A DNA stretch of 63,578 nucleotides, filler included, from Octopus bimaculoides (GCF_001194135.2; 4 parts of 4 records of this genome joined end to end with filler, not necessarily neighbours in it), one strand, 5' to 3'; positions 4,726 to 38,850 are shown, counted from the first letter of the whole stretch. Made by a program: numbers and translations. Notes: a model not told the origin generated them from the letters alone.

Positions 4726-5180
4726 GCTAGCTTCGCCACATGCAAATTGAAATAGTGAAGCAAAGAACGATAGAAGCACAAGTATAGAAGTTATTAGAGA
4801 AAGTAACGGTTTACAAGTTACAAAGTTATTTTAACTCAAGAATGTTAGTATGTTTGTAATACATGTTAAATTAATGAAAAGAAAGACGAATGATTAAAAA
4901 CTAGAGAAGTTTCTTAGCTTAGCAGCTGGACATTTTGCGTCATGATATAATGGTGTCAAATAGCAGAGCAAGATCAGGTTTGAGAGAAACCAAATGCAAT
5001 GGGGTTGTTTATATAATCTACAGCCAGAAATGGTCAAATAAGTGGCTGGCTTCGCCACAAGAAAATTGAAATAGCAGCAAAGGACAATAGTGAAATAGAA
5101 CAAATGGCTAGCTTCGGCACAAGAAAATCGAAATAGCAGCAAAGGGCAATAGTGAAGCAAAAAACAATAGAAACACAAAT
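4726..5180. repeat. Three diverged ~60-bp direct repeats
   Basis: gct(a/g)gcttcg(c/g)cac..aaat(t/c)gaaatag recurs near 4726, 5044 and 5106. Confidence 0.6.
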
Positions 5181-19158: not shown

Positions 19159-19470
19159 NNNNNNNNNNNNNNNNNNNNNNNNNNNNNNNNNNNNNNNNNN
19201 NNAATAACTTGCAGTTGTTTCCTTCAAAATTCCTACATGCTCGAAATGTACATACATCAAGGTATATTTGTAGAAAATTTCACGAAAAAATATTAATTTT
19301 CCTGGAAGTTAAGAAGAATTTAAGTGGACTCTGTTGGAATTTCCGAAAATTGTCCCCCACCCCCATTCCAAAACACTTTCACCGGAAATTTTTGTATATT
19401 CGAATTCTACATAGTAAATACTATATGCATAGAAAATTTCATTAAAAAATATTCATTTTTCTGAAAGTTA

Positions 19471-19549
19471 TGACCTCCCAAAGTCTGGGGGGTAAAACCC
19501 TGTAGTTGGCATAACTACAGGGTTTTACCCCCCAGACTTTGGGAGGTCA
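19471..19549. repeat. Perfect hairpin with 37-bp arms and a 5-nt loop
   Basis: tgacctcccaaagtctggggggtaaaaccctgtagtt-ggcat-aactacagggttttaccccccagactttgggaggtca. Confidence 0.97.
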
Positions 19550-20149: not shown

Positions 20150-21090
20150 CATGCAGGTTAATGGCAGATTGCTTCAGCTTGACACAAAGGCCAAATAGAA
20201 CAGCTGGATCCAGTATCAACCATGAAAAGTCCGTTAAACACACGATCCTTAACAAAGAATACAAGATGAGATGAAAAATTGTGGGAAGAATTTGACGTGC
20301 CCAAATCTTCCGTAACTAGTTTCCCAACAGCTTGAACGAACAGGGCTGGATGCATCAACAGGCTTTATCCTTGAATGTGGCATGGTACCAACAGAGACTG
20401 GAAACCATTGGAGTAGAACTAGACGACTGTGACTTAGAACAGCTTCTGCTGCGAGGACGACGAGAGCTGGTGTGTTCTTGCCACAATGTGTCCATGTGAC
20501 ATGCTAATGCATTGACTCTCTCCAAAATGTCGTAATGTGACGAGGGAGAAGACTTTGTGGTAGTAGAGGAAGCTACTACGGGGTCCGAACACATATGGTG
20601 AGGTGCGGGCTGCACAGTGAACTCTATGATCTTGTTCACCATGGTGGCTATCTGATCGAGCGAATTGGAGTTGACCATTGTGGCCAGTATGGATTGGACA
20701 TTTGGTGGTAGCCAAGAGAAAAATAATTTTCTAAGCAGAGGATTGTCGTCAAGTGGAGTGTCACAGAGTTCACACAAACAACAAAGAAACTCAGATGGCG
20801 TCCTATCTCCCAGGTGTTCATCCTACATCAGTGTTTGGAATTTACTTTCCACGAATTGTGTGTTCCAACAGAGAACCTCAGATTTGACGGACGCATAAGT
20901 CGTGTCCGGATGTGGGTCAGTGATGAGATCATTCACTGAGCATGCAAGGGGTGCAGGCATCCCACAGTACAAAAGATTTAGCTGTTGTTGGTGAGGCACC
21001 ACATGGGCAGAAAAATATGCATCCAATTGAGCGAACCAAAGCGTGACATCACCAGAGTACACGGGTAAGTTGGGAAGACTCTTTATATAG
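20150..21090 (-). mobile_element. Ty3/Gypsy gag-protease fragment from a different lineage than 14573-18456
   Basis: LPVYSGDVTLWFAQLDAYF, LRKLFFSWLPPNVQSILA, LCWYHATFKDKA.CI.PC and LFMVDTGSSCSIWP. Confidence 0.85.
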
Positions 21091-23234
21091 AGAAGAGAAA
21101 AAAGGACCAAAGAACCGACAAAAGTGTTGCTGGAATAGTAACGTGTGCAAAAAAAATATTCTTAGCAAAATTTTTGAATTCTTTTGTGTACTGTGAGCAG
21201 CAATGAAAAGAAATTTCTTTTTTAGTCGCCAAACCTGTGTTGCAGTCCACTGAAAAAAACAAATGTTTGTGTTTTCTTTTTTTTAAGAAGTCATCAGAAA
21301 ATGGCAGGTGAACCGGTGATTTCTTTTTTTCAACACATGAGGCAATCCAAACATTGCAGTAGACAGGAACGATGGGTGGAAGTTGATGGTTGGCTTGTTT
21401 GAAGTGTCCTCCCGTAGCTGCATTTGGTGTATGTACTGGCATCAAACGTTGATGGTCGACATTGTGGGAGAAATTACTTCAAAAGGAGATTACTTGAAAG
21501 AATACCATGTAGTTCCTTGCGGGAAGAATGCATACTCTGCGAGGTACAAGTTCGAGGTGAAAAACACAAATTCTAAAGGTTCACTTGAATGAAAGAAGAT
21601 ATTGTGACGTCGGGTCAGGCTGCCATTCTGTAGTTCGGGTGAGGCATCTACGAGAAAGCTTGCAGCGGCCAAAATCCTTTTTCTGTCAGGGTCACCATTT
21701 TATAATGGAGTTGAAGGCTTGTGATACCTGTGGAGTATCTCCTTCTCAAATTATAATTATTTCTGTAGTCTTAAGGATTTGGAACATGAAGAACAAATTT
21801 ACAAGCGGAGTGCAATTCAATAGTTGTATATTTTTAGTTCTTGTTCATGTGGCTCCCTCCCAGTGACCATCTTTATGACAGCGTTATAGCTCCATTCATG
21901 TGAGGTTCATTGCCTCTGGAGATAACAGGTGAAGTTAGAGTGGGATAAGAGTCCGCTGTGAGCTGCCAGCTTCGCAGTGTTTCTCAGCATAAGCAAGAAG
22001 GAAGAAAGAGAAAGAATGTCTTAATTCTCCTGCTTAAATAGTCGTTGCTGATGAGTCTCATGCATGGCAAATGGTTGCAGGTGAGATCTCGCTCCTGTCT
22101 CGGACATGGTAATGGCTACCGGTGAGATCTTGTACAAAATTGCATTGGCTTCTTGTGCCTCTCTATAGTTTCCAAAAGACCTTGACCAAAAAGTGTCCCC
22201 AAAAGCATTGCTATTACATATACATACATGTATATACGTATATATACCCATACATGTGTTCAAGATGTGGAAAGAATAATAGAACCATTATTTACTTACT
22301 CATTCATGTCTGTAGATCAATGTTTTGTAAGTTTATGCTGAAAAGTTGTCATGGGTAAGAAAGAATTTGGCTGTGAATTAAGTTCCTTATAAAGATTATT
22401 TGACTATCTTCCTTTGACAAGGATGATGAAACATTTTCTCTTTTAGTGCTGCTATGACAATAAAATGTACCTAGTTAACTTCGTAAAGGGGCTAGTGATC
22501 AAATGGAGACAACAGGGGTTTGAAAGGACCCTTTAGTCATGCTGAGAACATGACAACATCTCTAATATTGGTGCCATAAGAAAATGTACCCAGTACACTA
22601 TGAAGAGTTGATGATAGGAAAGATATCCAGTCATAGAAATCAAGTCAAAAATGATATATACAAGCAAGACATGGTTTCCTGGCAGTAACTCTGAATAAGA
22701 ATTGAATGACTCGTCCAACTTATGCCAGCATGGAGAGCAGAAAACGATGACGATTATGATGATAATGACTTGCAATCACACATCATTTATGAGATTGTTT
22801 TTATTTTGTAAATTTTACATTGGAAGGAAATGGTTGTTTCTATTGACCATGTGATAAGGCCAGTCACCCAAAATTTCAGGCCTTATGCTTGTAGTAGAGG
22901 CAGTGAATTGGCAGAATCGTTAACATGTTAGATCAAATGCTTAACGGCATTCTGAGTTCAAATTCCGTCAGTTATTTCACTTGAGAATTATATAAGGGTG
23001 TGTGTGGAATATTCGACCACTTACATAATCCAATGAACAGGCTGTTCAGTTGATCAAACAATTGAATATTCATCATAAAGAAAAAACAGACATAAAAACA
23101 GTCTTTTATTTATTTACTTACTTATTACCTAAGAGCATAATGTAAAGCCATGAAAATGGTTTGAATTTATGACTTCTTAATCATTAAAACAACATATTAT
23201 CATCCCAACATCCTTAAAAACTAGTATGAAATAA

Positions 23235-27772: not shown

Positions 27773-27865
27773 CTTCTGAGCTTCTGATCTTGTCATATCA
27801 CCTCGACAAAGCAAAAGATTGATCAGTTGATCTCGACGCATGTCTGGGTATTTATGCACTAGACC
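27773..27865 (-). CDS. EXOC3: EXOC3 exon (GLVHKYPDMRRDQLINLLLCRGDMTRSEAQK)
   Basis: T-tract-gcAG acceptor and AAG|GTCAGT donor. Matches the Sec6 LVSKYPDIRDDHI.ALL.VRGD motif. Confidence 0.96.
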
Positions 27866-28494
27866 CTGCAAAAAAAAAAAATTATATATATATATATGTG
27901 TGTGTGTGTGTATGTGTGTGTGTGTGTATGTGTGTGTGTATATATATATATACCAGAGGTAGAGTAATTATATATATTCAAGGTGAATTATAGATGTTTC
28001 ATTAAAGCATCTATTTTTCAACATGCATGGAAACAGTCGCTTCTGTCTCACTCCCTTTTTATATATGTATATTTGAATTTGCTGCCAAGCAGAAGCATGT
28101 TGAAACCTGATAGGTTTTTTTTTCACTCTTGTTTTGAAATAATTTTCTACCTTGAAATTTGAATGGCTGTGGACAAATAAGGTAATATATTTTAAATTAT
28201 TCATGTTACTTTGTAAATATGGAGGGATAGTGCTGAGAAAGGTTATACTTGACAAATTTAAATTAAATTAATTTTTTAAAAATTGATTTATTTAATTTTC
28301 AAGTTAAACCCCTAACTATAGTACACTATTAACTCACAGTAAGTTTTTAAAAAGTATTCTGTTCGTCTCACCCGCTGACAGCTTTTATTCATATCAAGGT
28401 GAATTATAGATGTTTCATAAAAGCATCTATTTTCCAACATGTATGGAAATAGTCACTTCTATCTCCCTCTCTTTTATATATATATATATATTAT

Positions 28495-28880
28495 CTGCTT
28501 TCCATGTTGGCATGGGCTGGTCAGTTGACAGTTTGACACCAGACTTCTGTGACTGATTTGGCATGGATTTTACAGCTGGATGCCCTTCCTAACACCAACC
28601 ACCCCGCAGAGTGGACAGAGTGCTGTTTATATGGCACCAACACAGGCGAAGTCAGAATTGGTATGGCTTTTACAGTTGGATGCCCTTCCAAATGCCAACC
28701 ACTTCACAATGTGGACTGGATGCTTTTTACATGGCACCAGCACTGGCAGAGTCACCAAGTAACTTGCAAGACAAGGAATTTTGAGAGGAGGTGATCTTGT
28801 GTCAGACGATGAAAGGTTAGAGTGTGACAGAGAAGCAGAAACAGATATCTTGCTATAGAGGAGGTACATGGTTACTCAGA
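28495..28880 (-). mobile_element. RTE 3' UTR remnant in an EXOC3 intron
   Basis: gctggatgcccttcctaacaccaaccac motif, present twice. Confidence 0.7.
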
Positions 28881-29769
28881 GAGAGAGAGGGGGGGGGGGT
28901 CATAAAATAATTAAGAGCGGTTGTCTGCACAAAGAACTGCATGCTGATGACCTAATTCTTATAGTCAAATCTGCAGATGATTTAAAAAGAAATTGCAAAT
29001 ATGAAAGCAAAACCTAGAATCAACAGGCTTCCATGCAAACTTAGCAAAGACCAAAATATAAACAGTGTAAACTATTGATATACAACAGATGTAAAGGGAT
29101 TACAAGCAGGCTAGTAGAGAAGGTAGATGCCATGTATGGCAGATGTATAGGAGTGATTAGCAGTAAGACTATATAATGAAATAAATTCCTTAAGATGTTA
29201 GGAAGACTCACTAGAAGTAGTTGGTAGTTTTTCTTTATGTCTTTACATCTAACTAGTAGTGGAGGGTGGATGTTCCAAAAGCATAGTATTCAGATTGAGA
29301 AGAAGATAAGAAAAGCTAGCTGAGGGAGATATTGCCTCAGCTAGCAACAAAGGTATTTATCTCTCAAAGATTATGGTGTATGCAAAGTGCAATGATGCAC
29401 AGGCATTTGAAACAGCTGGAAGGAAATTGATACAGACATGTAATGTATATAGAGGATGTTAGTTGTGCCAAGTACTTGAAGCAGTTGACAGTTTGAAGGG
29501 CAACCACCTATGGAAACAATGCCAAAACTGGAATATATAAGGGAAACATAACCCCAACATGCCTAGGAGCACAGTAACTTCAAATAAGACCTAACTTGGA
29601 TTGTAAGAAACCATCCAACACATGACAGCATAGAAAGAGGACATAAAATGGTGATGATACATACACACACACATGCTTTTTTTATATATATGTTGGGGGT
29701 TTGTGATTCATTGCTACATTTGTCACTGTAAAGGGTTTTAACTTTGGTAGAACTAAAAGTAGTTTGTGT

Positions 29770-29910
29770 TAGGAAGAGCATCTAGCTGTAGAAACCATGC
29801 CAAAACATATTATGGAACCTGGTGTAGCTCCTGGTCTTGCCAGCTCCTGTGAAACCGTCGAACCCATGCCAGCATGGAAAAACAGATATTAAATGATGGT
29901 GATGATGATA
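29770..29910 (+). mobile_element. RTE 3' end
   Basis: ttaggaagagcatctagctgtagaaacc...cccatgccagcatggaaaa...atgatg. Confidence 0.75.
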
Positions 29911-32520: not shown

Positions 32521-33466
32521 TGGTAAACTTAATCTGTCGTCTGGCTCAACGTCCCTATCAGGTACTCTGGTACAAGCATTCAGGCCAGATTCCTGTTTGA
32601 GAAGACTTCTCTCTCTCTGTCCCATTAATCTCAAAGGCCATGTGAAGGGTCATGGACACTGCTTTCTTTTTTGGCTATAATGATTACATCATCATCATCA
32701 TTTAGCATCCATCTTCCATGCTGGCATGGATTGGACAGTTTGACATGATTTGTCAAACTAGAAAACTATGTCTGTTTTGACACACACACACACAAAGAGA
32801 TTTGTCTTCAAACAACAAGTGACCGTTCCTAAAGCATGAAAACCGCTCATAAACTTGTGTTTTGCTCATGACAGAGACCTTCTAAGCTGTTTGAAGCATG
32901 AGAACTGTTTCAGTTAACATTCCCCCCCCAACAGAAAACAACATTTCATGGAAGCATGCTGCTTCAGCCACTACAAAATTCAATGAACAGGGAAGAAGCA
33001 CTGCAAAAGAAAAACACATCATGTGGCAGTACAACTCTACCCAACGCCACTAGTCAGCAGACTGACACATAAGTGTCACATCAAATGGCTTCTAGCCTGA
33101 ACTACCACAGGCTTGTCCCACACAGAACGTTTCCAGCTACTTTTGGGCACCTCCTCATGTATGGTGAATATAAGGGGTTATAATTCAAGTCATGTCTTCA
33201 TAAAACTCATCTTCATGTTCACACTAATCCAATATATGTATAGAGATGTTTTATTTTAAATGTGATATACAAATCAACTGAAATTTTTGGTGAATTCAGT
33301 CTGCAAAGTAAGTACATATTAAAGCAGAAGACTGAAAAATATATACCAAATTATTCCAGTAGACTGTTTTAGTATGTTTTTGTGTGTGTGCACGCATGTG
33401 CATGCACACACATCAGTGAAGAGTTGAAAACAGGATAGAAAAAAAAAATAGTAAAATAACACTTAC

Positions 33467-33619
33467 TTTAAGAGTATAGCCTTTAGGTATTGATGTAGAA
33501 CCTTTCTCTCAGCTTTTTCGAGGATTTTGTCATAAGCTTTTGGTCGGAGATGTACAAAATCATTATTATAATCTTCTAAAGTAGCACAAATAGTTTTCAC
33601 AGCATCACTACTTGTCATC
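33467..33619 (-). CDS. EXOC3: EXOC3 exon (W|MTSSDAVKTICATLEDYNNDFVHLRPKAYDKILEKAERKVLHQYLKAILL|K)
   Basis: tttctttcttttAG acceptor and AA|GTAAGT donor, 153 nt, phase 2-2. Matches KW..SNAVD.ICVTVEDYFNDF..I/LR. Confidence 0.98.
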
Positions 33620-33656
33620 CTAAAAGAAAGAAACTTCATTACAAATTTTGGCTTTT

Positions 33657-34013
33657 GAAGTAGTTGTGTGCTGTCAACTTAATGTGACAGTCCCCTGAAA
33701 GGAATACTACTGTTGGTTAGACCTAGGAAGCTGCACCGCTTCCTGTCAGCCTTGACACATTTCCTGTGTCCTTATGTTTACAAGGGAGAGACAAGCAGCT
33801 CCACCCAGCTAAACCTGCATCCAAAGACATGTTTCTGAGTTTCTGGATGCAGGCTTAGCTGGGTGGAGGTGCTTGTCTCCCCTTTGTAAACATAAGGACA
33901 CAGGAAATGTATCAAGGCCGACAGGAAGCGGTGCAGCTTCCTAGGTCTAACCAACAGTAGTATTATTCCCTTCAGGGGACTATCACATTAAGTTGACAGC
34001 ATACAACTACTTC
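33657..34013. repeat. Long foldback (arms 33657-33823 and 33844-34013, ~95% identical)
   Basis: The arms differ by 9 substitutions and one 3-bp indel. A 14-bp direct repeat aaattttggctttt lies at 33643-33656 and 34068-34081. Confidence 0.97.
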
Positions 34014-34184
34014 ATCGTATCACTACTGCATAAATCTCTCTGAAAGATTTAGAAATGTATTATTTCTAAATTTTGGCTTTTATTCTCAATAACAATTTTA
34101 GCAATGACAAAACAACTACTACTTGCCTGGTGAGTTTCAGAAAGAAGCTTTGTACTTGCTGTTTAGAAATTCTATGTAGATACA

Positions 34185-34345
34185 GATATGGCTTTGTGGT
34201 CAAGAAGTTTCCTTTACAACCACATGGTTTCAAGTTCAAGCCCACTGTACAGCACCTTGGACAAGTGAGTGTTTCCTACTATAATCTTAGGCTGACCAAT
34301 AGATTGTGAGTGAAACTTGATAAGTGAAAACTATGTAGAAGCACA
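34185..34345 (+). mobile_element. SINE family A, 5' half
   Basis: ggctttgtggtcaagaag...ggttcaagcccactgtacagcaccttggacaagtg. Confidence 0.75.
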
Positions 34346-34399
34346 AAATCAGACCTAAAATAACTTTCCTAAGCCTTGATTTTTTATACATTGCAAAAT

Positions 34400-36366
34400 A
34401 GGGCAATTTATTCAAGATGGCTGTGCCCTTATGAAATATGTGCTTGCATGCTTCAGCATATATAATAGCATATTGTAATGATGAGGCCTCATCGTTTTCT
34501 TCACATTCCAAGAAAGTAGCAGCTGCTGAATTAAAATACTGTGCATTTGTTGCTGAGCATAATTTCCCAATTTCTATTTTGGACCACTTACCTGGCCTTA
34601 TTGCAAACACCTGTCCTGATTCTAAAATCGCCCAGGATGCAAAGTGTGCCTGAATGAAAGGCACATACATCTTTCTTAAAGCCATTGGACCCTATGGCTT
34701 TAATGCTTTATTAAAAAAACTTCATTCATCAAAATTCTCACTCGTTATTGATGAAACAACTGATGTTTCAACACTAAAACAACTTGTCCTGGTTTCCAGA
34801 TATTATGACGTTGAAATTCAAAAGACAGTCGACGATTTTCTTACACTTATAGAAAAACAGGATTGCAGTGCTACAGGTATATACAACTGTCTTCTATCAT
34901 TTTTAAATGAACATGCTATTCCTCTGGAAAATTTGATAGGTTTCGCCTGTATAATGCAAATGTTATGATGGGAAGCAAAGGAGGCGTTCAGCACTTGTTG
35001 AAACAGAACAGGCCAGATCGTTTTGTGCGAGCCTGTGTTTGTCATTCTTTACACTTAGGTTCATCAAATGCGTGCAATGAATTACCGAATTCTGTCAAAG
35101 AATTGACAAAAAGTGCATACTTTAGTCACAGTCCTAAAGATCTGCAGAAAATAGCTTCAATTGATCCTCACAAAATCCTGCATGCAAGTTGCACTAGATG
35201 GCTGTCTCTCAAGCAAGTTGTGCAGCGCATTTCAGAGCAGTGGCCAACACTGCTGGCACATTTCATACAAGCAACATTAGAGGGTGGGTATCCGATTACG
35301 GCTCGACAAATTCTCATTGAAATGAAGCATCCTCTTACAAAGATGTATTTAGCATTTCTCTTTCATTTTAAACAACGTTAACAAACTTAATCTGGAATTC
35401 CAGGCCAAAGGCTATCAGATGCATAAGCTTAAAAGAGCCATCAACGCTGGAATGAAGGGAATTTTGAGCAATTTCATCAGACCTGACTTACTTTCTGTCA
35501 TCAATGTGTGTGAGACTAATGTCAATGATGCAGCAACACACCAACCATTAGATTGTATCTACTTTGGTGCTGTAGCTGAGAGAATTTTATATGAAAATGC
35601 TACCATCATTGCCCCTGATGAATTGTTGACTTTCCAACAGAATATACTACGATTCTTTGTTAGTCTTTCAAATCAAATGCTCGTGCGGCTTTCGTCTTGC
35701 GATATGCAGAACAATTTGGAGCCTGGTGCAGCCTTCTGGCTCGCCAGTCCTCAGTCAAACCATCCAACCCATGCCAGCATGGAAAGCAGACGTCAAACGA
35801 CGACGATGATGATGATAATATTCAGGAATGGTGCCACTTGATGGTGCAAGGTTGTTCTTTCATCCCGTATAACGAGCTAGAAAAATTTTGGTTTGCTGTT
35901 TCACAAGAGAAATGTGGTGTACCGCTATCCACTGTCGTCATCCTTTATGCTCAGTCTTCTTTCTTTACCACACTCCTCTGCATCGTCAGAAAGAATTTTC
36001 TGTTTCCCACAATATCAAAACTAAAAATCAAAATTGCTTGAAAACTTCTACACTTATTGCTTTTATGAAGTCGAAAACTTTGTTATGAAATACTGATTGT
36101 ACAACACGGGAGCCAAATGAACAACTTTGTAAAACATTATTTGAAAAAAATTGGTACAACAGAGAACCTTCTCACAAAGATGATTTTTCTTTTTGATGTC
36201 CAAATATTCAACGTTTCAATAAATGTTTTCCAAATCAGAAAAATGTATAAAAAGTTCGTTTTGACTGTATTTGTGGGCTTCAGTAAAATTTTATATATTT
36301 TGATCAGATTCTGTACGTTTTTAAAAAAAATTCTGTATGTTTTGAAAAAAACCTTTGGCAATGCTG
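34400..36366 (+). mobile_element. hAT DNA transposon, decayed and 5'-truncated, antisense to EXOC3 within its intron
   Basis: FSLVIDETTDVSTLKQL, NANVMMG, CVCHSLHL (CxxH) and TRWLS. Right TIR ggcaatgctg (reverse complement cagcattgcc) ends at 36366, with ctgta(c/t)gtttt subterminal repeats. Confidence 0.9.
35716..35818 (+). mobile_element. RTE 3' tail nested in the hAT transposase
   Basis: tggagcctggtgcagcc...cccatgccagcatggaaagcagacgtcaaacgacgacgatgatgat. Confidence 0.85.
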
Positions 36367-37149: not shown

Positions 37150-37835
37150 AGAAGGATACTTTGAAAGAAATGAAGCTAGTATGCTTTGCTGGATGTGCAA
37201 TGTCAGTGTGCGAGTACAACAAAGTATAAGCATCTTGAGAGAAAAGTTGGTATGGTCATGTGATGCATATGGACAAGGACAGCTGTGTAAAGAAGTATCA
37301 ATCTCTAATTGTGAAGGGAACCTGAGGAAGAGGTAGACCCAGGAAGACATGGGATGAGGTGGTGAAGCATGATATTCAAAAGTTGGGCCTCACAGAGGCA
37401 ATGACTAGTGACTGAGACTTTGGTGATACACTGTTCTTGAGAAGACCTGTCAAACCAACTGAAATCGTAGTTGTGGCTGATGCTGGTGTTATGCAACAGG
37501 TACCTGTGCTGGTGGCACGTAAAAAGCACCTTTACTTTACATAATGATATTTTATATGATTTAGACAACCTTGATTGATTAGTATGTAAAAAATACTGAG
37601 TAATAGATTTAAATCATGGACTGCAAGTAATAAAAATCAGACTGCTGGTGCAGCAAAAAAAAAATGCACCTAGTACACTCTCTTAAATGGAATGGTGTTA
37701 GGAAGAGCATCCAGCCACAGAAACCATGCTAAAACTGAAACACTGGATCAAGAAATGGTCCTCCAATCCACTGAAGTTTGTCAAACCATCCAGACCATAT
37801 CAACATGGAAAGTAGCTGTAAAATGATGATGAGAT
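37150..37835 (+). mobile_element. RTE ORF end and 3' UTR pieces
   Basis: GRGRPRKTWDEVVKHDIQKLGLTEAMTSD near 37320-37410; a second tail remnant lies at 37650-37835. Confidence 0.8.
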
Positions 37836-38680: not shown

Positions 38681-38850
38681 ATGACCATCCAGTCTTTTTG
38701 TGTTTTGCAATGACCATCCTGTCTTTTTGTGTTTTGCAATGACCATCCTGTCTTTTTGCCTTTTGCAAAGACCATCCTGTCTTTTTGTCTTTTGCAATGA
38801 CCATCCTGTCTTTTTGCCTTTTGCAAAGACCATCCTGTCTTTTTTGTCTC
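38681..38850. repeat. 29-bp minisatellite, ~6 copies
   Basis: Units a(t/a)gaccatcctgtctttttg(t/c)(g/c)ttttgca start at 38681, 38710, 38739, 38768, 38797 and 38826. Confidence 0.95.

Follow-up and report, generated by a model that had tools for sequence, protein, structure and literature searches.

An intron of the Octopus bimaculoides EXOC3 gene contains a 411-bp segment that is enclosed by two exact copies of a 14-nt direct repeat and that consists largely of one long foldback. Judged against published insertions, the layout of this segment is likely to be a known signature of retroelement integration and not a new kind of mobile element. Our tentative explanation, to which we give a little less than an even chance, is a single insertion by target-primed reverse transcription (TPRT) of a short, heavily 5'-truncated retroelement RNA, derived either from a Penelope-like element (PLE) or from a LINE-type element with snap-back. 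Below, the window is the whole stretch of DNA that was analysed (63,578 nucleotides, filler included), and all positions in it are counted from its first letter.

A foldback insertion bounded by a 14-nt direct repeat

Direct reading of the sequence and a repeat scan placed the two copies of the direct repeat at 33643-33656 and 34068-34081. Along the plus strand the order of the parts is repeat, arm, loop, arm, tail and repeat, as follows.

33643-33656, no strand assigned: left copy of the 14-nt direct repeat AAATTTTGGCTTTT, a putative TSD whose final T is the first paired base of the foldback
33656-33829, no strand assigned: left foldback arm, 174 nt; in the proposed model an inverted copy that lacks the tail and reads as sense on the minus strand
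33829-33838, no strand assigned: loop ATGTTTCTGA, about 10 nt, the head-to-head junction between the two arms
33839-34014, plus strand: right foldback arm, 177 nt including a 3-nt indel; in the proposed model the sense copy, running into the tail
34015-34067, plus strand: unique tail of 53 nt, 28% GC, present at one end only and containing two small, non-significant hairpins
34068-34081, no strand assigned: right copy of AAATTTTGGCTTTT, an exact repeat

Alignment of one arm with the other gave 163 matches, 11 mismatches (10 transitions and 1 transversion) and one 3-nt indel around the 10-nt loop. The left repeat copy abuts the left arm, with which it has one T in common, while the right copy is kept off the right arm by the 53-nt tail. 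The GC content of the arms is 47%, compared to 36% for the intron, and the arms are compositionally foreign to their host. Tandem Repeats Finder reported nothing within 33643-34081.

A preliminary description of this DNA had proposed a single 411-bp insertion bounded by a 14-nt duplication, and this was borne out by the exact repeat and by its rarity in shuffled sequence. Among 3000 sequences shuffled with dinucleotide composition preserved, 1 had a word of at least 14 nt in common between the two 100-nt flanks of the foldback (a chance of about 3e-4). Within the window, AAATTTTGGCTTTT occurs exactly twice, even when one mismatch is allowed, and about 0.05 matches are expected by chance. Elsewhere in the real 20-kb piece, a word of at least 14 nt with the same geometry was found only at 27997-28060, where it belongs to a genuine duplication with a 416-nt period. 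Chance is an unlikely source of the 14-nt repeat. The same description had reported foldback arms of 167 and 170 bp; the foldback is real, but its arms are slightly longer, at 174 and 177 nt. Its other observations on the sequence proved accurate. The two hairpins with 7-bp stems that it placed in the tail are also present but carry no weight, since they fold no better than shuffled sequences (z = -1.6 and -0.55).

The foldback itself is predicted to form a very stable RNA structure. In the sense of the pre-mRNA its folding energy is -321.8 kcal/mol (z = -38), with uninterrupted helices of tens of base pairs, and in the antisense orientation it is -307.3 kcal/mol. Selection for an RNA stem was not significant: of the 10 transition mismatches, G·U pairs account for 7 when the foldback is read in the sense of the pre-mRNA and for 3 in the antisense orientation. 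An Rfam search of the element returned only sub-threshold generic miRNA-hairpin models, which are typical of any long hairpin, and a tRNA search of the element found none. Two further candidates were tried and rejected. The tail hairpins were dismissed as a functional 3' stem-loop because shuffles fold equally well, and a longer duplication reaching the start of the exon (a 17-nt match between 33596-33612 and 34011-34027) was dismissed because the similarity of the tail to the left flank had p of about 0.13 against shuffles.

Palindromes are a known artefact of long reads and of amplification, and we considered whether a chimeric palindromic read had been retained in the assembly. The 2015 O. 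bimaculoides model A0A0L8HX55 is truncated exactly beside the foldback, indicating that the region is hard to assemble. However, the differences between the arms (the 10 transitions, 1 transversion and 3-nt indel) have the spectrum of mutation and not of error. An artefact of this type would create neither a 14-nt flanking duplication nor a one-sided 53-nt unique tail, and the nearby exon and its splice sites are intact. We consider an artefact of assembly or sequencing scarcely credible.

The duplication does not abut the inverted repeat

Long near-perfect TIRs (163 of 174 positions are complementary here), a tiny loop and a length below 500 bp are the usual look of a foldback or MITE DNA transposon. 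On such an account the insertion would be a non-autonomous element of an uncharacterised superfamily with TIRs of about 175 nt as its transposase substrate; the 53 nt would belong to an asymmetric element or to its surroundings, and the 14-mer would be coincidental or a TSD of atypical length. Octopus has MITEs and many TIR families (PMC13282606), a hAT-like transposase remnant lies 0.3-1.8 kb away in the same intron, and palindromic repeats are known sources of edited dsRNA in other animals (PMC5625713).

The boundaries, however, argue against a transposon of this class. No exact repeat of at least 4 nt, nor one of at least 8 nt with 1 mismatch, abuts any boundary pair within about 8 nt of the TIR ends, and neither TA nor TTAA is present at symmetric boundaries. 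Chance is an improbable source of the 14-mer, whose left copy is in contact with an arm while the right one stands 53 nt off. Furthermore, the arms are without tandem sub-repeats of the Drosophila FB kind. TSDs of cut-and-paste superfamilies are 2-11 bp long, and we know of no such superfamily that gives 14-bp TSDs. The earlier statement that an ordinary MITE does not fit was therefore upheld, as no 4-14-nt duplication abuts the inverted repeat within about 8 nt, and we regard a foldback or MITE transposon as unlikely. The anatomy of the insertion, the non-random nature of its repeat and the absence of a MITE-type TSD are established by these analyses.

Two other classes of element were rejected. 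A Drosophila-type FB element would have tandem sub-repeats and an abutting TSD (9 bp in FB), neither of which is present. A Helitron would have TC and CTRR termini, lie between A and T, carry a 3' subterminal hairpin and lack a TSD. The ends here are TGAAG... and ...TTTCT, not TC and CTRR followed by T; in addition, the insertion is flanked by a 14-nt duplication, and its tail hairpins are non-significant.

A direct repeat that flanks the unit and on one side stands off the inverted repeat is also the arrangement that an att-like core would leave. In this scenario a circular DNA or RNA-derived molecule would have integrated across a 14-nt core, by a Crypton-like tyrosine recombinase or by re-integration of eccDNA, and the 14-mer would belong to the element itself instead of being duplicated target. 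Identity of 14 nt in the target by chance is unlikely, however, and no recombinase gene or family evidence was found. Integration events of the circle type are, to our knowledge, rare in animals, and we consider this origin highly improbable.

The layout may reflect insertion of a truncated retroelement RNA

The TPRT model would account for the insertion in three steps. The source RNA, of about 230 nt, would correspond to the right arm and tail (33839-34067), with its sense on the plus strand, and the segment at 33656-33829 would be an inverted duplicate of the retroposed fragment. First, an endonuclease encoded by the element would have nicked the two strands of the intron with a stagger of 14 bp, giving rise to the 14-bp TSD. 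Second, either each nicked strand would have served as primer for a copy, with two alternative start sites in use as in PLEs, or the 3' end of the cDNA would have folded back and copied itself (snap-back). Third, the expected product would be a TSD, an inverted copy without the tail, the 10-nt junction, a copy, the 53-nt 3' tail and a second TSD, which would now persist as an inert intronic repeat. A difficulty with the second step is the 10-nt loop: cDNAs primed independently would both need to have terminated at one position, which would favour self-priming or a short run-off template.

Published insertions provide close parallels for this layout. PLE insertions are strongly 5'-truncated and often have an inverted 5'-truncated copy adjacent at their 5' end; a tail of 30-40 bp is often found at just one end, and TSD length is dictated by the variable spacing of first- and second-strand cleavage (Craig et al. 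2021, PMC8557442). In Adineta vaga, inverted pLTRs of 181-218 bp, one of them with a 31-bp tail, form an insert that is enclosed as a whole by an 8-10-bp TSD, and the palindromes seen where the inverted copies join were interpreted as self-priming (Arkhipova et al. 2013, PMC3846280). Purified protein of a PLE cuts both strands of DNA and extends them, and it has two RT start sites whose spacing equals the tail (PMC11167929). TPRT by R2 in human cells generates snap-back 5' junctions, in which the cDNA is primed by its own 3' end and the upstream target becomes linked to antisense sequence (PMC11371274, PMC11331408). PLEs and LINEs of the RTE, CR1, L1-Tx1 and Dong-R4 types are abundant and recently active in Octopus (PMC13282606). 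The preliminary description had called the insertion an unusual type; this was not supported, as the same layout has been published for Penelope-like insertions and for R2 snap-back junctions. The 14-nt repeat falls within the variable TSD range of TPRT elements (about 7-20 bp for LINEs and SINEs).

We searched the insertion for the sequence features of a retroelement. A hammerhead ribozyme is a defining feature of canonical PLE pLTRs, and Naiad/Chlamys-type PLEs are without one. No CUGANGA core was present on either strand of 33600-34120, and no Rfam hammerhead match was obtained at E <= 10; a 230-nt terminal fragment might not include the hammerhead. Coding sequence is not required of such a fragment either. 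Ten open stretches of at least 30 aa in the element had no match in Pfam, and a 69-aa open stretch in one frame had none in a collection of 5.8 billion proteins. One element frame, compared with 1.84 billion representative proteins, gave a lone spurious match to a repeat protein. A 3' poly(A) or simple-repeat end, which most LINE and SINE copies have, is absent: the plus end reads ...GAAATGTATTATTTCT/AAATTTT and the minus end ...CAACTACTTC/AAAAGCC, where every A is accounted for by the repeat itself. Compared by eye with a TT/AAAA-like consensus, the right edge (CTTTT/AT) fits L1-like nicking for a minus-sense element, and ATTT/GT is a weaker fit to such a target for a plus-sense element, the sense that the architecture favours. 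Based on architecture alone, we class the insertion as PLE- or snap-back-like with some hesitation, at slightly below even probability, and do not file it as a PLE.

Non-mobile sequence can acquire a similar form. In a templated insertion during repair or replication of a staggered break (by fold-back priming, MMBIR or FoSTeS), about 230 nt would be copied from elsewhere, the nascent strand would fold back and copy itself, and fill-in of 14-nt overhangs would produce the direct repeat. Fold-back priming yields an inverted duplication with a short loop and a unique extension, and the insertion shows no recognisable TE hallmark: searches revealed neither a ribozyme nor poly(A), nor any coding remnant, nor another copy within 20 kb. 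By contrast, a clean 14-nt duplication would imply a cut with a defined stagger, of the sort expected from element endonucleases but not from spontaneous breaks, and the compositionally foreign arms mean that a distant donor would be needed anyway. A repair origin is, on these grounds, distinctly unlikely.

The insertion lies beside an EXOC3 3' splice site

The minus strand of the window carries the 3' part of a Sec6-family gene (EXOC3). Five exons correspond to UniRef A0A0L8HX55 (Octopus bimaculoides) at 100% identity inside the exon bounds, and the concatenated exons match Pfam Sec6 PF06046 with 84.1 bits (cutoff 29.7, E = 1.1e-23). The two parts of the gene that lie next to the foldback are the following.

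33467-33619, minus strand: EXOC3 exon of 153 nt, frame-preserving, encoding (M)TSSDAVKTICATLEDYNNDFVHLRPKAYDKILEKAERKVLHQYLKAILL; identified by UniRef, Pfam and ortholog matches
33620-33642, minus strand: native 3' splice region of the intron, with the AG at 33621-33620, the polypyrimidine tract uuucuuucuuuu and a candidate branch site gUAAU (A 33639)

The splice signals of the exon are an AG at 33621-33620 and a GTAAGT at 33466-33461 on the minus strand. The exon is conserved with the same boundaries, at 84% aa identity, in a contig from a distant cephalopod (L001, ENA ERZ21867824). The stretch that separates the stem from the exon is AAAAGCCAAAAUUU-GUAAUGAAG-UUUCUUUCUUUUAG. In the EXOC3 pre-mRNA the base of the stem (33657) precedes the A of the AG (33621-33620) by 36 nt, in agreement with the distance from the 153-nt exon given in the preliminary description. 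The proximity to a likely branch point that it had also pointed out is supported by our best candidate, gUAAU, which was picked by eye against the yUnAy consensus and whose A (33639) stands 17 nt from the stem and 18 nt ahead of the A in the AG. Owing to the duplicated 14-mer, the insertion has altered none of the 35 nt that precede the AG.

The public gene model A0A0L8HX55_OCTBM (177 aa) starts at an intronic minus-strand ATG at 33637-33639 (MKFLSFR...), in the branch-site and pyrimidine-tract region beside the foldback. The palindrome possibly broke an earlier assembly and left this model truncated there.

The host intron is rich in repeats and contains a tRNA-like SINE, the hAT-like transposase remnant and more SINE-like copies. 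The tRNA-like SINE copy, at 34185-34345 on the plus strand, is about 100 nt from the right repeat copy. The decayed hAT/Buster-like remnant (about 34390-35841, plus strand) lies 0.3-1.8 kb from the foldback, antisense to EXOC3, and is made up of three consecutive ORFs with frameshifts; its DUF4371 match is weak (E = 0.0026, below the cutoff). A second SINE-like family is present in introns in both orientations, at 22611-22736, 29488-29657, 29766-29880, 35754-35811, 37695-37832, 32687-32745 (inverted) and 28548-28754. Oppositely oriented pairs of these SINE-like copies could form dsRNA in the pre-mRNA as well.

Other repeats in the window

The 20-kb piece also contains a perfect 79-nt palindrome at 19471-19549, with 37-nt arms and the 5-nt loop GGCAT. 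It is flanked by AGTTAT on the left and by aac followed by AGTTAT on the right, a miniature of the layout in which a repeat, a foldback, a short offset and a second repeat follow one another. Rfam miRNA-hairpin matches to this palindrome were sub-threshold only, and it abuts an 88-nt direct repeat (19227-19314 and 19386-19473, 73%). Foldbacks of such a kind are common in the O. bimaculoides genome.

At 27978-28059 and 28394-28475, an 82-nt direct repeat with 90% identity and 416-nt spacing represents a partial tandem duplication. It adjoins a (TG)n/(TA)n microsatellite and is about 110 nt from an exon at about 27773-27865; there is no foldback between the copies. Gag-like ORFs from a retrotransposon remnant are found on the minus strand at 20823-21110 and 20355-20777 (DUF7041, E = 2.8e-8, above the cutoff), and a minisatellite at 38681-38849 has 5.8 copies of a 29-nt unit at 92% identity (consensus ATGACCATCCTGTCTTTTTGTCTTTTGCA).

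Other copies and the age of the insertion

Comparison of the element with the 20-kb piece and with contig L001 by blastn yielded chance matches only, of at most 34 nt. Exact-pattern scans of metagenome, prokaryotic genome and viral contigs, which hold essentially no octopus genomic DNA, returned no copy, and four 18-19-mers from the element had no occurrence in a full-text literature search. Neither an autonomous partner nor an empty site was recovered from these collections. Contig L001 (ctg91514l of ENA ERZ21867824) is labelled as metagenome and is really cephalopod nuclear DNA, in which the EXOC3 exons are separated by much shorter introns; at 2570-2725 and 4888-5172 it carries orthologous EXOC3 exons and a mariner-type Transposase_1 ORF. 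In this contig, the only orthologous genomic one that was found, the intron is about 860 nt long compared to about 3.4 kb here, and the two introns are not alignable, the contig being too distant.

The divergence between the arms provides an estimate of age. They differ at 11 of 174 sites (6.3%), a JC distance of about 0.066, or about 0.033 per arm. In a calibration for Octopus TEs, JC distances of 0.065 and 0.09 correspond to about 18 and 25 My (PMC13282606). The insertion would accordingly be roughly 9 My old if the arms were identical at birth and have undergone no gene conversion since. O. vulgaris and O. bimaculoides split 13.3-33.5 My ago (PMC13282606). An insertion of about 9 My would be younger than this split, and an empty site is therefore predicted in O. 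vulgaris.

Double-stranded RNA, editing and splicing

In the EXOC3 pre-mRNA, the foldback is a self-contained, near-perfect dsRNA of about 174 bp that has no pairing with the exon. Long near-perfect dsRNA is the standard promiscuous substrate of ADAR. Among 19 species, O. bimaculoides had the strongest hyper-editing signal, and the fraction of its loci that can form long near-perfect dsRNA is exceptionally high, 4.4e-3 of random 50-mers (PMC5625713). Hyper-editing of the stem by ADAR is accordingly likely, but it would be generic, given how exceptionally dense such loci are in this genome. Since the stem is self-contained, with no pairing to the exon, recoding of the exon would need an indirect effect of the recruitment type.

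The base of the stem is within about 17 nt of the candidate branch site. Splicing is probably not disturbed by the predicted stem, because the duplication has kept the branch site and pyrimidine tract in place together with another 14 nt. Both functional ideas of the preliminary description, recruitment of ADAR and an effect on splicing, would thus be plausible but generic. A bolder proposal is that the insertion represents an undescribed family of octopus hairpin retroposons, or a systematic product of PLEs, that is a major source of intronic dsRNA, and that the present copy acts in cis on the EXOC3 exon by recruiting ADAR or by modulating splicing; we find this improbable.

If the TPRT model of a truncated retroelement RNA is correct, one insertion event was sufficient to create a long, self-contained dsRNA hairpin within a gene, and the EXOC3 intron offers a clean, small example. 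PLE or snap-back insertions would then be one source of the dense octopus dsRNA that feeds hyper-editing. For EXOC3 itself the consequence is likely small, the splice signals being preserved by the duplication and the exon intact.

Comparison with known systems

The insertion resembles foldback MITEs and long-TIR transposons, such as the Harbinger-derived palindromic repeat of Xenopus and the Drosophila FB and Galileo elements, in being small, non-coding and composed almost entirely of inverted repeat. Like them, it would become a long dsRNA once transcribed and thus a substrate for ADAR hyper-editing. By contrast, their TSDs of 2-11 bp abut both TIRs, whereas the sole duplication here is 14 nt long and offset by 53 nt on one side. 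With the products of L1 twin priming (5' inversion) it would share an origin by TPRT, inversion at the 5' side and a TSD on its flanks (7-20 bp). In L1, however, the inverted part derives from a different, upstream part of the RNA, whereas the octopus arms are copies of one another.

PLE insertions are similar in several respects. They have head-to-head inverted repeats (about 180-220 bp in PLEs), a one-sided outer 3' extension and a short junction or palindrome at the inversion. They are also enclosed as whole units by a TSD of variable length, are strongly 5'-truncated and are abundant in Octopus genomes. The octopus insertion differs from them in having no hammerhead motif, in the length of its one-sided extension (53 nt, compared to 30-40 nt for published PLE tails), in its 14-bp TSD (8-10 bp in rotifers) and in its target, which is not a microsatellite. 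Many PLE targets are microsatellites. In addition, searches of open stretches of the element revealed no RT or GIY-YIG endonuclease coding sequence, and its resemblance to pLTRs is one of architecture.

The R2 snap-back junctions are engineered insertions in human rDNA made by a site-specific element, unlike the fixed natural insertion described here, and the octopus copy is without a recognisable LINE 3' module or poly(A). In architecture the correspondence is nonetheless exact, as a self-primed cDNA predicts the very order of TSD, inverted copy, loop, copy, 3' end and TSD that is present in the EXOC3 intron.
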